Shown here: piece by piece, positions 3,800-52,638 of the stretch | Numbering within the stretch: position 1 is the first letter of the stretch | Layout of the letters: the number at the start of each line of letters is the position of its first letter | Origin: Basidiobolus meristosporus CBS 931.73 | Taxonomy: Eukaryota > Fungi > Basidiobolomycota | Reading direction: 5' to 3' | Assembly: GCA_002104905.1 (NCBI GenBank) | Contig: MCFE01000008.1 | Coordinates: forward strand, 1 to 64,000 | DNA length: 64,000 bases | Program-made: the position numbers and the translations under genes | Notes under the pieces: model-generated | Told to the model about the DNA's origin: nothing | What the model saw: only the letters and a program-made list of their open reading frames with translations | Databases searched by the model: none

Positions 3800-4290
3800 A
3801 GTCTATTGTGTTGTTGCAGCCACATGAACCTATATTAGAGGTTAGGTTCCATTCTTTGTGGCAAGTGTGTGGGGAACTATTTGTATGTCGAATGACCGCA
3901 CTACAAACCCATAGTGGTCGGCGTCTACTGGAAAGGCTTTTTGATCTTCTCAATGTTGATGTATAAATTTTTAGATGCAAGGGCAGTATCGTAACATAAT
4001 GTCCCTGAATTTTGCTCATGTTATTGGGTAGAAATGCTGATTTGGTATTCATTAAAAGAATGCGTGATTTCACTTGCTGGTTTATAGGGTAAGAATGAAG
4101 TATCTGTACTTTCGTAGATCTTACCAAGGCATTCTTTATTTTCCAGGTCGCAGTTCCATGCAGCTCCCTCTCCAAGTGTTGTTATGGGTAATAACGGCAA
4201 AGTGTCAGGATATTCCACAGCCCTAGCGTCACATTGTATGATTTTCAAGTTGGCCGTAATGCTAAAATACATATGAACCACAAATGTTGT
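3800..4290 (-). pseudogene. Possible heavily decayed Ty3/gypsy RT-RNase H relic
   Basis: Across frameshifts and stops, fragments read FAVIT/PITTLGEGAAWNCDLENKECLGKIYE (like the RT C-terminal FAKIAAPLTDLLKK..WT.EC..AF.KLKE) and KPF/VDADHYGF/AVI (like RNase H KPF..TDAS.YG.GAVL). By-eye similarity only. Confidence 0.3.
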
Positions 4291-45493: not shown

Positions 45494-47344
45494 TTAGTGG
45501 CCGTGAGGGTCGCTTTGTTCCTTTTGCTCAGGGATAACCTTGATCATGTCGTCGATACGGAGAATGGAGATGGCTGCCTCGGTGGCTGATTTGAGTGATT
45601 TGATCTTGGACATAGCTGGCTCCAAAACACCGGCGCGCAAGCTATCACGGATCTCTCCCTTGATCAAGTCAAGACCGTACCACTTCAACAACATCTTCTC
45701 TTCGTCGGTGGTGGTTTGGGATTCGTTATGGATGGAGCGCAATCTAGCAACAAGCTCTGTGGAATCTTGGGCAGCATTCACAGAGAGAGTTTTGGGAATA
45801 ACGAGAAGTGCGTTGGCAAATTCGTTGATGGCAAGTTGTTCACGGGAACCAAGGGAAGTGGCGAAATTCTCAAGGTGGATGTTCAATGCGGCTTCAACAG
45901 CACCACCTCCTGGAACGACCACATTGGACTCGAGAGTACGCTTGACCACGCACATGGAATCGTGAAGGGAGCGCTCCATCTCATCGAGCATGTAGTCGTT
46001 GGCACCACGAAGAATAAGGGAGGCGGATTTTTGAGCCTTGGTTCCCTTGATCAAAATGCACTCGTCGTCGGAGATACGCTCTTGGACAACTTGCTCAGCA
46101 TAACCAAGGTAGCTTTCCTCGAAAGATTCCTCTCCGTCCAAGTTGGCAAGAGTAGAGATCATGGTAGCCCCGGTGGCCTTGGCAATTCTTCTCATGTCCT
46201 CCTTGGTAACTCTTCTCACGGCCATGGCACCAGCCTCGACGAAGCACTTGAGGCAGAGGTCATCAATACCCTTGGTTGTCAAGATGACATTGGCACCAGT
46301 ATCAAGAATCTTCTTGATTCTGTCAGTGGTGATTCCGATTTCTCTCTTACGGATATCTTCCAACTTCTCTGGGTCATCAACCAAGATGTTAACACCAAGG
46401 TGCATACGAGCCTTCTGGAGGTTAATATCCAAACAGGCGATCTTAGCATCAGTAATGCGAGTCTTCATGGCGGAAGAGGCAACAGTGCAGTTGAGGGCAT
46501 ATCCATCAACGATCATAGACTCCTTCACACCCTTGCCGTGGGCTTTAAGGATGTTGACTGCCTTAACGGGGTATTTGGCTTCACCTCTGGCATTGACATT
46601 CTTGACGGCAAGCATAGAGTCGACCACCATGTTGGCGAAAAACTCGTCATCCGTACCAATAATCTTACTGGACATGCTGGTCTTGGCGACGTTCATCAAA
46701 CATTCACGTCCAAGGGCATCGACCTTGGAGGTCATCTTGTCAACAATAAACTTGCATGCCTCTTTGCAAGCTTGGCGATAGCCGGAAATAATAACTGTGG
46801 GGTGAATTTTGTTCTTGACGAGTTCGTTGGCACGTTTCAAAAGCTCGGCAGCAATGATGACGACTGAGGTAGTACCATCTCCGACTTCCTTGTCTTGTTG
46901 ATGAGCAAGTTCGACCAAAACACGACCGGCGGGATGCTCCACTTCCAATAGGCCGAGAATGGTGGCACCATCGTTAGTAATGGTCACATCCTGAGCAAGA
47001 GATGCTAATTTAGTCGAGAAACATTGTAAACAATTGTATTATAAACTTACACCAATGTCATCAACCATCATTTTATCCAAACCAACTGGACCCAGAGAGC
47101 TCTTCACGATGTTGGCGATAGAAGAAGCAGCCAAGACTAAAATACAAAGTAATAGTAAGAAACTAGAACCAGATCAAGGATGTACTGGGTCCGTGAAGGA
47201 ATTAGGAGTATTTGGAAAATCGAATTGAATAGGGGGACTGATGGCTACAACTGTGTGGTAATTACCATTTTGACTTCTGACATCCTGACCGGTGGCACGC
47301 TCTCCACCGAGAAACAGGGTAGGATTACTTTCTTTGGCATACAT
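45494..47344 (-). CDS. CCT1: T-complex protein 1 subunit alpha (CCT/TRiC chaperonin)
   Basis: [62 protein letters not shown]; two introns near the 5' end. Confidence 0.97.
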
Positions 47345-47677: not shown

Positions 47678-48736
<1,059 letters not shown>

Positions 48737-49229
48737 TGTGTTAATTTACTGTTTGAGAAGGATTTAGTCGAATTATAAACTGAACACAGCATTATAAAAT
48801 CTATAATTATATCCTAGTTTATATCTCATTAAATAATGCCCAGTTTAACCGAAATCTACCAAGCCATCAAAACTCAAATCAACGATGAAATCAATTTCTT
48901 CATACGGGGAACAGAACTTGTTGGTTTACGCATGGCATTGGAGATATTACCCTTGTAATATGCAGCAATGCCAGTCGAGATTACAATCCTGGTTTTGATT
49001 CGGCCAATGATGGATCGATTTACTGGCAGGCTCATTTAGGAGTAGAAAAAAAATTGGCTAAAAAAAACGAAATAATCAGGGGGACTAAGCAGGGGGGCCT
49101 TGAAATTTAGTGGCCGAACTGAGGTGTATAAATGTCGCCCATAGGATGTACCTATCCCTCATCCAACACTTGGATCGCAAGTTCCATCTGACAACAGGTA
49201 AAGATCCATTCATTTTATACTCTCCCGAT

Positions 49230-49326
49230 AGTTGAGATGACGAAAACGCGTCTTGATACCCTGAACTTCTTCGGACGTTTCTTGATGAATCAAAATCGCA
49301 TTTAGGAATTCCTCGTTTCTGATCTA
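49230..49326 (+). ncRNA. snR57: Box C/D snoRNA guiding 18S Gm1572-equivalent (snR57-like)
   Basis: C box GAGATGA 49234, D' CTGA 49261, cUUCGg hairpin, C' TGATGA 49283, D CTGA 49319. The 15-nt TAGGAATTCCTCGTT is complementary to conserved 18S AACGAGGAAUUCCUA; the D+5 rule points to the G of AAC[G]AGG. Confidence 0.88.
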
Positions 49327-49484
49327 CTCACTTTCGAGATTACTACTGTTGCTATAAGAACTCTTTCTCATCCATTTCGTTTATTAGATGCTATTAACTT
49401 GAAGTTCATTCAATGATGACATTCAATCGGACATACGGTTTGAAGGTAACTATCAATTTGATGTGCTCCATTGTGTGAGGAACT

Positions 49485-49570
49485 TTTCGTGATGAAAGAG
49501 AAGTTTTGCCAGTTCTGCTACTGAACAACATTGCTGATACTTACTTTACTCTCGCTTACCTTCTGACAAA
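49485..49570 (+). ncRNA. snR61: Box C/D snoRNA guiding 25S Am1133-equivalent (snR61-like), copy 1
   Basis: C GTGATGA 49489, guide GCCAGTTCTGCT 49508-49519 complementary to LSU AGCAGAACUGGC, D' CTGA 49521, C' TGCTGA, D CTGA 49563; external stem ttgtgtgag/ctcacacaa plus ctttt/aaaag. Confidence 0.88.
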
Positions 49571-49724
49571 AGCGACTCACACAATTTAATGTCTTATTTC
49601 GTATGACTAACCAATTCTTCAGTAGTATTATATTCAATACATTGCCACTATTCCTTCAACTACCGTCCGTATCTGTAAACCTACAAGCAATAGGTGAGTT
49701 TCTTGTTATATACGGAGATTCCTT

Positions 49725-49810
49725 TACAATGATGAAAGAGAAGTTTTGCCAGTTCTGCTACTGAACATCATTGCTGATACTTACTTTACTCTCGCTTACC
49801 TTCTGAACAA
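49725..49810 (+). ncRNA. snR61: Box C/D snoRNA guiding 25S Am1133-equivalent (snR61-like), copy 2
   Basis: 77-nt body identical to copy 1 except one base; C ATGATGA 49729, D CTGA 49803; different perfect external stem agattccttt/aaaggaatct. Confidence 0.88.
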
Positions 49811-49956
49811 AAGGAATCTTCTGTCAACAATATTTAACAATTATACTAATAATTTCCCAGATTATCTATAGATATCCTCTATAATATTGCCTGACCCTCA
49901 TTCTTACTGTACAAACACTCATGTAAGTATTCTGAATGATCTTATGAATGAGAAAG

Positions 49957-50024
49957 CTAAATGATGTATTTTCCAATCCGTGTTTCACATGATCTAATGA
50001 TTATACCCTTTTGGACCTGATACT
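49957..50024 (+). ncRNA. snR18: Box C/D snoRNA, U18/snR18-like (LSU A649 region)
   Basis: 13-bp external stem atgaatgagaaag/ctttctcattcat; C ATGATGT 49961; TCCGTGTTTCA 49977-49987 complementary to LSU UGAAACACGGA; C' ATGATT; D CTGA 50017; D' degenerate. Confidence 0.75.
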
Positions 50025-50163
50025 TTCTCATTCATGTTGATACTTTTTGACATCGTACTAATTTACCTTTAGATTTACAGATTGAGATACATATACGCTG
50101 TACATATTCTAATCTGGGCCTTCACTTACAATGTAAGTTATTTACCGTACTGGATATTTCAAC

Positions 50164-50259
50164 CAATGGCGATGATGAGCTCTTGCTGGCACCAGTCGTA
50201 GAAAATTATGACGATAGCTTTCGCGAACCTTTATATACGCATAGGTTCCTGAGCCATTG
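50164..50259 (+). ncRNA. Box C/D snoRNA with guide to 18S CUGGUGCCAGCA (G562 region)
   Basis: Stems caatggc/gccattg and gatatttc/gaaatatc; C ATGATGA 50172; TGCTGGCACCAG 50184-50195; C'-like TGACGA; D CTGA 50249; D' non-canonical. Confidence 0.75.
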
Positions 50260-50351
50260 AAATATCAATCAAAGTTTTTTAAACGATTAAGTTTACTGAC
50301 TATTTCATCAATAGGATCTCCGAAATGTAAATAAATATATTTTATAATCTA

Positions 50352-51146
50352 TTACTCGTCGTTGTTGAATTGAATACGTGTTCTATCTTTGACAGTAGTG
50401 TAATAATCCTGAACCACATCATTGAGATGAATATGCTTGTCAACCTAAAAATTACATTATTATATATCAATCTAGCGACCAGATAACAAGAAGGATTACC
50501 TGAGCTCTAGACTTGAGCAATATTTGTTGAGCTTTTTCTGGACTCAACTCATAACGAGTTATCAGGTAACATAGTACCATAGTTGCTGACCTACCCCTCC
50601 CAGCTGCTAGGTATTAGCGGATGTATTACAGGGAGCGTATTGAAAAGGTTACCCTTGCAATGAACGTAAATCGTCCCGTTATTTTTCTTCACGCAGCTTT
50701 CAATATATTCTACACCGGCACGAATGTTCTCGAGGCTAGGTGTAGTGAAATCTTCAGTCTCCAACCGAACCTGCTCTATATCCAGTTCTTTGTAGAGTTG
50801 ACAAAGCTCGTCAAACTCTCTGCACATATTGACGACGTATTTTACGTTGGCGGTCCGATTTAGCTCTCGGATCAAAGACTCATCAGGTAAAGCGCCTATG
50901 ATAACGGTTTTGTCAACCCTTCATTCAGATTAGTTGCGGCTAAGGTGAGCGTTTCACTTGAGCCTACCGATTCCACCACGTCCAGCCGCTCAAGGGGGAC
51001 AGGGTCTGCGCGAGTAATTTGTTATACCACAGCGAAACGTAAAACTGAGTTCTTGCAACAACGCCAACTTTCGTTCCTTCATTTGCTGGTGGTGAAGTGG
51101 TTGTCATATCTCTTGTGGGATGGAGGCAAAGTTGGAAGGGATTCAC
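50352..51146 (-). CDS. PTPMT1: Phosphatidylglycerophosphatase PTPMT1-like dual-specificity phosphatase
   Basis: Spliced WWNRVDKTVIIGALP...VKYVVNMCREF...LETEDFTTPSLENIRAGVEYI...IYVHCKAGRGRSATMVLCYLI; three predicted introns. The start could also be the ATG at 51107. Confidence 0.88.
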
Positions 51147-51430: not shown

Positions 51431-52150
51431 TTAGAATTTCATGGCATGAGGAGCTTGTCCCTTACGAAGAGTGAAGGAAGCATTCAAGTATGAGCGAAGA
51501 TGAGGAACTTGGGCAACGGCAGCCAAGATTTCCTTGTCAACGACCTTTTGATCAGCGGAACGAGACTCAGAAATAACCTTCTTGGGTTGCTTCTCGTCGA
51601 AGAATTCTTCCTCGGTCTTTCCGGCCTTGGAGGTCTTTTCCTTCTTGAAGTAAGCATCATCGAATTTCTCGTCAACCTTGACGTTGGAAAGATCGACCTT
51701 GGTGGAGGTAGCAAGAACATATGCTTGGTTGACACGTCTGAGAGGAACACCGTTAACCTTGTAGGGACCGGTGACCAACAATAAACCAGAGGCGAGTTGC
51801 TTCAAGAAGACGACTCTCTTGCCACGGAAACGACCAGCCAAGAGAACAAGAACAGTACCGGGGGTAATGGTGGCACGAAGCTTGGTTGGCTTGGCGGTCT
51901 TGCGGGAAACCTTGGGTTGGGCGATGTCTTCGGCGGGATACCAACGAGAAGCCTTGTTCAAGGCAACAACGCGCTCTTTACCGTTTTTGTCACCATTAAC
52001 TTGGACAGTTTTGGTGGTTGGGGCGGCGGTGTCGTTCTTGGCAGCGGCGACCTTTTGCTTCTTGTAAAGGGCACGCTTGGCGAAAACGCTAGAGCGGGAC
52101 AGGCGGGTGATGCCTGGGGCGACGAAAGAATTTCTGGGTTTGTGAGACAT
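51431..52150 (-). CDS. RPL6: 60S ribosomal protein eL6 (long N-terminal form)
   Basis: RWYPAED...TPGTVLVLLAGRFRGKRVVFLKQLASGLLLVTGPYKVNGVPLRRVNQAYV...YLNASFTLRKGQAPHAMKF; predicted 5'UTR intron 52168-52248. Confidence 0.97.
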   Translation of the reverse strand: MSHKPRNSFVAPGITRLSRSSVFAKRALYKKQKVAAAKNDTAAPTTKTVQVNGDKNGKERVVALNKASRWYPAEDIAQPKVSRKTAKPTKLRATITPGTVLVLLAGRFRGKRVVFLKQLASGLLLVTGPYKVNGVPLRRVNQAYVLATSTKVDLSNVKVDEKFDDAYFKKEKTSKAGKTEEEFFDEKQPKKVISESRSADQKVVDKEILAAVAQVPHLRSYLNASFTLRKGQAPHAMKF

Positions 52151-52638
52151 GTCCTTTAGAAATACCACTAGAAATCATTGGCAAATTAGTATGTGGATGG
52201 ATGGAAATGTCAGAGCTACTGATATTCTAGAAGAATTCACCAACTCACCAGATGCTAGAGTCTCGAAATCGATCTCTCTTCTGATGTGGATTGAGGAAAG
52301 AGAAAGCAACAGACGTCGTTCTTGGTTATTTATTGCCCCAATCGTGGTGAGTCCACGGCCAACACCAATCAGATGGGTTTACCACCGGATCCCACCGATA
52401 TCCCCGAAGTTATGCAAATCATGGGTGAGTGTTGATTGAATTCTCCAGTAGTTTTATAATGATTTTTAACAACCTGCCGAACGATACTGTACAAATATAC
52501 ATTCACAAAACTGTTCGTAAACTAGGATATTTTGGGAGTGGATTGATGTGTATCTCTGGGTGGTGTGTTCTCCTGGGCTATGGTTGGCGTCGAGGTTGAA
52601 TGTTCGGATTGTAGAAATCGGCGCTTGGCAGGAATATC

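Follow-up and report, generated by a model that had tools for sequence, protein, structure and literature searches.

Box C/D snoRNAs encoded in the introns of non-coding genes are well documented in fungi. In Neurospora, C/D snoRNA clusters with one snoRNA per intron reside in UHG-like non-coding host genes, as established by RT-PCR (Liu et al. 2009, PMC2780460). Three such clusters, one of them snR57-snR55-snR61, have been traced across fungi (Luo et al. 2013, PMC3596301). According to that study, every cluster member in euascomycetes, basidiomycetes, and Rhizopus resides in an intron, and the spliced host RNAs have no coding function and little conservation (PMC3596301). A positional rule for intronic C/D snoRNAs, which concerns their placement before the branch point, has also been discussed (PMC2780460). 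Basidiobolus is outside the coverage of the surveys of the snR57-snR55-snR61 cluster, referred to here as fungal cluster II (PMC3596301, PMC2780460), and goes unmentioned in a survey of fungal snoRNAs (PMC5824354).

We analyzed a stretch of 64,000 nt from Basidiobolus meristosporus CBS 931.73 (contig MCFE01000008.1, positions 1 to 64,000 of the forward strand), called the window below. Basidiobolus is a zoopagomycete. Between the genes for a proteasome subunit and a phosphatase, the window contains a locus that is very probably a Pol II-transcribed non-coding host gene with five intronic C/D snoRNAs; its transcription, splicing, and processing, and the methylation guided by its products, we infer from sequence. 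The initial annotation of this DNA had proposed a UHG/GAS5-like non-coding host, and both the sequence and the comparison with B. ranarum fit this proposal. The host gene is well delimited and probably unannotated.

Organization of the locus and its splice signals

The gene order in the window is CCT1, PUP2, an ORF-free stretch of about 1.6 kb, a phosphatase gene, and RPL6, with the snoRNA locus in the ORF-free stretch:

45494-46987, minus strand, CCT1 exon (protein 95% identical to that of B. ranarum and 83% to another B. meristosporus CBS 931.73 sequence)
47786-48736, plus strand, PUP2-type proteasome alpha subunit gene (stop at 48736)
49127-50350, plus strand, predicted snoRNA host gene (TATA box, six short exons, five introns)
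about 50350-51000, minus strand, dual-specificity phosphatase gene (Pfam DSPc family match)
51431-52168, minus strand, RPL6 ORF (90% identical to B. ranarum and B. meristosporus proteins)

The phosphatase is assigned to the DSPc family by Pfam, and its initial name was PTPMT1. The gap between PUP2 and this gene had been described as ORF-free, and the ORF list from 48736 to the phosphatase gene indeed contains frames of at most 53 amino acids. The elements of the predicted host gene are as follows:

49127-49133, plus strand, TATA box TATAAAT, 71 nt upstream of the first 5' splice site
49157-49197, plus strand, exon 1 (start placed about 30 nt 3' of the TATA box, within a pyrimidine-rich run)
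49198-49404, plus strand, intron 1 (GTAAAG ... TATTAAC ... AG; D-box end to branch A 75 nt)
49405-49445, plus strand, exon 2 (the least certain exon; carries the C-box-like AATGATGA and no D box)
49446-49622, plus strand, intron 2 (GTAACT ... GACTAAC ... AG; D-box end to branch A 44 nt)
49623-49693, plus strand, exon 3 (identity to B. ranarum at shuffle level)
49694-49860, plus strand, intron 3 (GTGAGT ... TACTAAT ... AG; D-box end to branch A 43 nt)
49861-49922, plus strand, exon 4
49923-50072, plus strand, intron 4 (GTAAGT ... TACTAAT ... AG; D-box end to branch A 41 nt)
50073-50132, plus strand, exon 5
50133-50314, plus strand, intron 5 (GTAAGT ... TACTGAC ... AG; D-box end to branch A 47 nt)
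50315-50350, plus strand, exon 6, the last (AATAAA at 50330-50335; tail to tail with the phosphatase gene)

To define the introns, 5' splice sites, the C and D boxes, branch points, and AG ends were located by pattern scans and measured. The introns are 150-207 nt long (n = 5), and their C boxes lie 35-43 nt downstream of the 5' splice site. Five introns with one C/D snoRNA each had been reported initially, and five units bracketed by splice signals were recovered here; the same arrangement of one snoRNA per intron holds for all six snoRNAs of B. ranarum, with the borders of intron 1 and exon 2 uncertain in the window. The description of all five introns as canonical applies to introns 3-5, but introns 1 and 2 have non-consensus 5' splice sites, GTAAAG and GTAACT, respectively. 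In a strict splice-signal test four of the five units pass, and the fifth fails solely through GTAAAG.

Where intron 1 ends is ambiguous. In its sole consensus-like branch site, TATTAAC, the A stands only 7 nt ahead of the AG. The intron could instead end with the AG at 49385-49386 and use a non-consensus CTCAT about 47 nt past the D box; this is probably the option adopted in the initial annotation. In the corresponding intron of B. ranarum, a clear CTAAT branch site is followed by a pyrimidine-rich tail to the AG. The spacing of 41-48 nt between D box and branch point, originally claimed for all five introns, is thus seen in introns 2-5 (44, 43, 41, and 47 nt), but intron 1 gives 75 nt, or about 47 nt if CTCAT is used.

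The TATA box reported in the gap is present at 49127, and in B. ranarum TATAAAT occurs 61 nt before the first 5' splice site (locus position 3950), the neighboring sequence being unconserved. Joined, the exons of the window would make a spliced RNA of about 306 nt; the corresponding length for B. ranarum is 427 nt. The longest ORFs of the joined exons, 11 and 51 codons, respectively, are mutually unrelated. Exon 1 is 0.51 identical to its B. ranarum counterpart (0.50 in shuffles), exon 2 is likewise unconserved (0.44 versus 0.43 in shuffles), and GTAAATAAA is common to the last exons of both species. The exons therefore resemble those of known non-coding hosts in that they lack a conserved ORF and are less conserved than the intronic snoRNAs.

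The snoRNAs and their predicted targets

The five introns contain snoRNAs of four types, with the snR61 type present in two copies:

49231-49326, plus strand, snR57-like C/D snoRNA (variant C box GAGAUGA at 49234-49240, D' CUGA at 49261, C' UGAUGA at 49283, D CUGA at 49319)
49484-49569, plus strand, snR61 copy a (Rfam RF00476, 50.2 bits versus a gathering score of 45)
49724-49809, plus strand, snR61 copy b (Rfam RF00476, 51.9 bits versus a gathering score of 45)
49947-50032, plus strand, C/D snoRNA with a U18-type guide (C AUGAUGU at 49961, D CUGA at 50017; 10-bp external stem)
50165-50259, plus strand, snR40/Afu_190-like C/D snoRNA (C AUGAUGA at 50172, D CUGA at 50249)

Of the five C boxes, GUGAUGA, AUGAUGA, AUGAUGU, and AUGAUGA agree with the canonical RUGAUGA or come close to it, and GAGAUGA is a variant; the D box is CUGA in all five. 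The C and D boxes of all snoRNAs are kept in B. ranarum.

Rfam was run at gathering thresholds and then under relaxed conditions (E up to 10). The two snR61 units are the only matches at gathering thresholds, so that three of the four snoRNA types miss the gathering score. The sub-threshold matches (snR57, Afu_190, and snR40) are centered on the guides. In particular, the snR57 model (RF00474) fits the 3' half of the first snoRNA with its D guide (49291-49325) and scores 23.8 bits, short of the 50 bits set for gathering. The Afu_190 (RF01498; 27.3 bits, below 35) and snR40 (RF01201; 16.5 bits, below 50) models match at 50170-50253 and have the GCUGGCACCAGUC guide as their common feature. The U18-type RNA, whose unit with C and D boxes spans 49955-50024, is assigned to no Rfam family, the best match at relaxed E-values being DdR12 with 18.7 bits, and SNORD18 is absent among the matches with E up to 10. 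The Rfam check suggested in the initial annotation for snR57, snR61, and SNORD18 thus gave snR61 twice above the gathering score and snR57 once below it. By its guide and its predicted target G, the snR57-like RNA appears to work like snR57, its Rfam score being below the family threshold.

The cores of the two snR61 copies are 97% identical, and their flanks and terminal stems differ. Since the stem register varies among the snR61 copies, stems were judged by duplex energies. Strong terminal stems were found for four of the five snoRNAs in the window (-8.6 to -13.3 kcal/mol, equalled by 0-1 of 300 shuffles) and for four of the six in B. ranarum. They include those of snR61 copy a (-8.6 kcal/mol, with none of 300 shuffles as good), snR61 copy b (11 bp, -13.3 kcal/mol), and the snR40-like RNA (-12.0 kcal/mol). 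An external stem had been assigned to each snoRNA; this applies to these four but not to the snR57-like RNA, whose stem is weak (-3.9 kcal/mol). Across paralogues and orthologues the stems are built from differing sequences, for example GAUUCCUUU/AAAGGAAUC, GGUUAC/GUAACC, CAAUGGC/GCCAUUG, and AAAAGC/GCUUUU, and these changes are compensatory.

Guide targets were checked against metagenome-derived rDNA of eukaryotes other than Basidiobolus (six complete units); rDNA is absent from the 64-kb window, and a search of viral contigs for rDNA gave nothing usable. The D guide of the snR57-like RNA has 13-15 nt of complementarity to SSU AACGAGGAAUUCCUA in four of the six units, 11 nt in the fifth, and no match of at least 10 nt in the sixth; the fifth nucleotide before the D box is opposite a G. 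Three other guides find their complements in all six units: the D' guide GCCAGUUCUGCU of both snR61 copies (12 nt, LSU AGCAGAACUGGC, fifth nucleotide opposite an A), the U18-type guide UCCGUGUUUCA (11 nt, LSU UGAAACACGGA), and the snR40-like guide UGCUGGCACCAG (12 nt, SSU 530-loop CUGGUGCCAGCA). The initial report of 11-15 nt matches to conserved rRNA was thus reproduced. Shuffled snoRNAs gave 0.18 rDNA matches of at least 12 nt per set of five, and the observed matches are positioned exactly as expected for guides.

The box beside the guide is canonical in the snR57-like and snR61 RNAs and degenerate in the U18-type and snR40-like RNAs. Due to these degenerate D' boxes the predicted target nucleotides of the latter two are uncertain by one to three positions; for the U18-type RNA, the register depends on whether CACA or AUGA is chosen as the D' box. 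The predicted methylation sites are the SSU G in AACGAGG, the LSU A in AGCAGAAC, LSU GAAACACGG, and SSU CUGGUGCC. We take the targets of the window guides to correspond to sites in the yeast rRNA numbering. The S. cerevisiae guides for these sites are snR57 (18S Gm1572), snR61 (25S Am1133), U18 (25S Am649/Cm650), and snR40 (18S Gm562) (PMC5199042). The snR57-like RNA also has a D' guide, identical in both Basidiobolus species, and snR61 also has a D guide; for neither of these second guides was a consistent target found in the six rDNAs with G-U pairs and one mismatch allowed.

Some of the snoRNAs could be decaying pseudo-snoRNAs without guide function, the U18-type and snR40-like RNAs being the candidates, a situation that would be compatible with the host-gene model. 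Neither guide is followed by a canonical D' box, the U18-type RNA has no Rfam family, and its D-side guide is unconserved in B. ranarum. We nevertheless consider such decay improbable. Both species have identical guides, identical C and D boxes, and the same 4-5 nt past the guides, against diverged flanks, and strong compensatory stems occur on both RNAs in the window and on the snR40-like RNA in B. ranarum. Moreover, degenerate D' boxes are frequent in functional snoRNAs.

Conservation in B. ranarum and the mode of expression

The B. ranarum contig JASJQH010000073.1 has the same order of phosphatase, gap, PUP2, and CCT1. On the PUP2 strand, the gap contains one snR57-like, three snR61 (53.9-57.9 bits in Rfam), one U18-type, and one Afu_190-like snoRNA. 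For the 591-aa neighbor gene, the B. ranarum contig ends at that gene and lacks the region towards the snoRNA cluster. The other CCT1 locus of B. meristosporus CBS 931.73 and its three RPL6 loci are not syntenic with the window, and none of the four guides is present there. A search of bacterial and archaeal genome contigs with the PUP2 exon retrieved two stray eukaryote-like contigs, both without snoRNAs.

The snoRNA cores are 83-90% identical between the two species (86% for the snR57-like and 83% for the snR40-like RNA), and the guide and boxes of the U18-type RNA are identical. The intron portions flanking the snoRNAs show cross-species identities of 0.50-0.69 versus 0.46-0.55 in shuffles, and the exons 0.44-0.63 versus 0.43-0.54. 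Each snoRNA of B. ranarum is preceded by a 5' splice site (GTAAGA, GTAAAT, GTGAGT, or GTAAGT) and followed by a branch site (CTAAT, TTAAT, CTAAC, or CTGAT) and a pyrimidine-rich tail to the AG, with 48-61 nt between D box and branch site. Accordingly, GTRAxx lies before and CTRAY and AG lie after each of the 11 snoRNAs of the two species, with similar spacing throughout. The retention of snoRNAs, splice signals, spacing, and pairing while the rest of the sequence drifted is the hallmark of a gene that hosts snoRNAs without coding for protein.

An alternative is that the snoRNAs derive from an unspliced polycistronic transcript, or from individually promoted ones, and are released by an Rnt1-type endonuclease, the splice-like signals being unused. 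S. cerevisiae produces snR57-snR55-snR61 in this manner (PMC3596301), and such a mode would agree with the two non-consensus 5' splice sites among the five and with the ambiguous 3' end of intron 1. However, triplets of splice signals surround all 11 snoRNAs in two species despite shuffle-level drift nearby, with a chance expectation of about 2% per site: around random 85-nt stretches of the window, a comparable set of 5' splice site, branch point, and AG turned up in 1.9% of trials. In addition, the single TATA box seen lies at the 5' end of the host gene, and the intronic mode is the one used in other non-Saccharomyces fungi, including Rhizopus (PMC3596301). Unspliced expression is therefore very unlikely. 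A further alternative would place the snoRNA introns in a long 3' UTR of PUP2, which lies upstream, is also encoded on the plus strand, and leaves 460 nt between its end and the first 5' splice site. This is likewise very unlikely, given that TATAAAT precedes that splice site by 61-71 nt in both species, that both species have a AATTATAAACTGAA block 35-50 nt past the PUP2 stop that resembles a 3'-end signal of PUP2 itself, and that the intervening spacer of about 400 nt is unconserved.

In a separate non-coding host gene, Pol II would start from the TATA promoter and transcribe about 1.2 kb, the five introns included. Splicing would free the snoRNA-containing introns, and the lariats would then be debranched. 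Exonucleases would trim each intron to the snoRNP core; the C/D kink-turn would set the limits of this core, together with the external stem in four snoRNAs. The resulting snoRNPs would direct 2'-O-methylation to four rRNA positions that are conserved. With neither conserved sequence nor ORF, the spliced RNA, about 300 nt long, is probably a disposable carrier.

Relation to described snoRNA host genes

The Basidiobolus locus shares with fungal cluster II the linkage of snR57- and snR61-type snoRNAs on the same strand, the presence of one snoRNA per intron with flanking splice signals, and short, ORF-less, poorly conserved exons (PMC3596301, PMC2780460). It differs in that snR55 is missing, snR61 is doubled in the window and tripled in B. 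ranarum, and the host also holds U18-type and snR40/Afu_190-type snoRNAs. Linkage of snR57 and snR61 without an snR55-type guide had been put forward in the initial annotation and is supported: the snR57-like and snR61 RNAs are linked as in cluster II, and no complement of at least 8 nt was found to the SSU segment taken to hold the snR55 site. Similarly, the characterization of the host as ancestral in style agrees with the intronic state of the cluster across fungi (PMC3596301). The novelty implied by calling the gene hidden was overstated, as spliced non-coding snoRNA hosts are already documented in fungi, with RT-PCR support (PMC2780460, PMC3596301), and the Basidiobolus locus adds an example.

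In S. cerevisiae, the SNR57-SNR55-SNR61 unit has the same snR57/snR61 linkage and the same target sites, 18S Gm1572 and 25S Am1133 (PMC5199042), but it is intronless and processed by endonuclease. The vertebrate UHG and GAS5 genes resemble the Basidiobolus gene as spliced non-coding hosts with one C/D snoRNA per intron, a constrained distance to the branch point, and exons that are less conserved than the introns. They are not orthologous to it, however, and the Basidiobolus introns are tiny (150-207 nt); the pyrimidine-rich run near the presumed start of the Basidiobolus gene may be a 5'-TOP sequence. The D-box to branch-point spacing in Basidiobolus resembles the positional rule for intronic C/D snoRNAs in animals and fungi that is discussed in PMC2780460. 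The original experiments on the branch-point positional rule of intronic C/D snoRNAs were reportedly those of Hirose and Steitz. As for the remaining two snoRNA types, yeast U18 resides in an intron of a protein-coding gene, and yeast snR40 is independent.

The locus is of use chiefly to genome annotation and to work that surveys how snoRNA genes are organized; it opens no new question. The contrast between the two species, in which snoRNAs and splice signals were kept, exons drifted, and snR61 multiplied, makes a clean evolutionary example. More speculatively, the snR57-snR61 linkage in a spliced non-coding host may date from the common fungal ancestor, as may the D-box to branch-point spacing of 41-61 nt, and the orphan second guides, which are perfectly conserved, may direct lineage-specific modifications; we regard this as possible but rather doubtful. 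If it is true, splicing-coupled assembly of C/D snoRNPs with a vertebrate-like positional rule would be ancestral to opisthokonts. With this locus, the range reported for the intronic snR57-snR61 cluster grows to take in an early-diverging fungus with poor annotation, and Basidiobolus would thereby join Rhizopus and Dikarya in having intronic snR57-snR61.

Flanks and presumed start of the host gene

A block conserved between the window and the orthologous locus of B. ranarum (L004, contig JASJQH010000073.1) lies 35-60 nt downstream of the PUP2 stop in both species and is probably the 3'-end signal of PUP2. In the host gene itself, a pyrimidine-rich run is located approximately 25-35 nt 3' of the TATA box, at the expected transcription start, a possible parallel to the 5'-TOP sequences that open the transcripts of vertebrate snoRNA host genes.

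Conserved block and pyrimidine-rich runs
window 48771-48800; L004 ~4255-4290 (-): AATTATAAACTGAA.GCAG.ATTAT, downstream of PUP2
window 49153-49165: pyrimidine-rich run, CCTATCCCTCATCC
L004 ~3915-3925 (-): pyrimidine-rich run, TATCTTTCC

The strain is an exact match to neither of the two public Basidiobolus proteomes. Among the neighbouring genes, CCT1 (window 45494-46987) shows 95% identity to B. ranarum and 83% to the B. meristosporus public proteome, and RPL6 (window 51431-52168), which has three paralogues in B. meristosporus and two in B. ranarum, shows 90% identity to both proteomes. The 591-aa ORF at window 54045-55823 matches no Pfam family; its one relative, at 58% identity, comes from B. 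ranarum. Eukaryotic proteasome alpha-5 fragments were also found in two records filed as bacterial, OZ196155.1 (MAG: uncultured Granulicella sp., chromosome 8; 85% identity over 26 aa) and QNUV01000112.1 (Microbacterium arborescens; 62% over 82 aa), both probably representing mislabelled eukaryotic sequence or contamination.

Second guide regions and a C-box motif in predicted exon 2

In the snR57-like snoRNA the D' guide does not differ between the window and B. ranarum, and the D-side region of snR61 is nearly identical; no target was detected for either among metagenome rDNA stretches (120 in the case of the D' guide).

D' guide of the snR57-like snoRNA
window 49242-49260; L004 ~3824-3842 (-): AACGCGUCUUGAUACC before CUGA

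The region preceding the D box of the snR40-like snoRNA (window 50219-50248) could fold on itself (GAACCU ... AGGUUC) and has no rRNA match; its B. ranarum equivalent differs partly in sequence, its ends being self-complementary as well.

A perfect C-box motif, AATGATGA, is present in predicted exon 2 (window 49412-49430). The 11 nt directly 3' of it have a complement, SSU ACCGAUUGAAUG, in two of the six rDNA units of other eukaryotes; no D box follows the motif in this exon, and B. ranarum shows only vague resemblance to the stretch. The motif sits where the published cluster order (snR57-snR55-snR61) places snR55, and could be either a chance occurrence or the relic of a lost snoRNA.

Duplication of snR61

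The window carries two snR61 copies and the B. ranarum locus three.

snR61 copies
window 49484-49569 (+): snR61
window 49724-49809 (+): snR61
L004 2939-3023 (-): snR61
L004 3205-3289 (-): snR61
L004 3484-3568 (-): snR61

All copies of one species have species-specific bases in common (e.g. GCUACUGA versus GCUUCUGA), which points to independent duplications or else to gene conversion. The intron flanks of the two copies in the window are 49-62% alike. Those of the B. ranarum copies are still 66-74% alike, and the duplications in that species are therefore recent.
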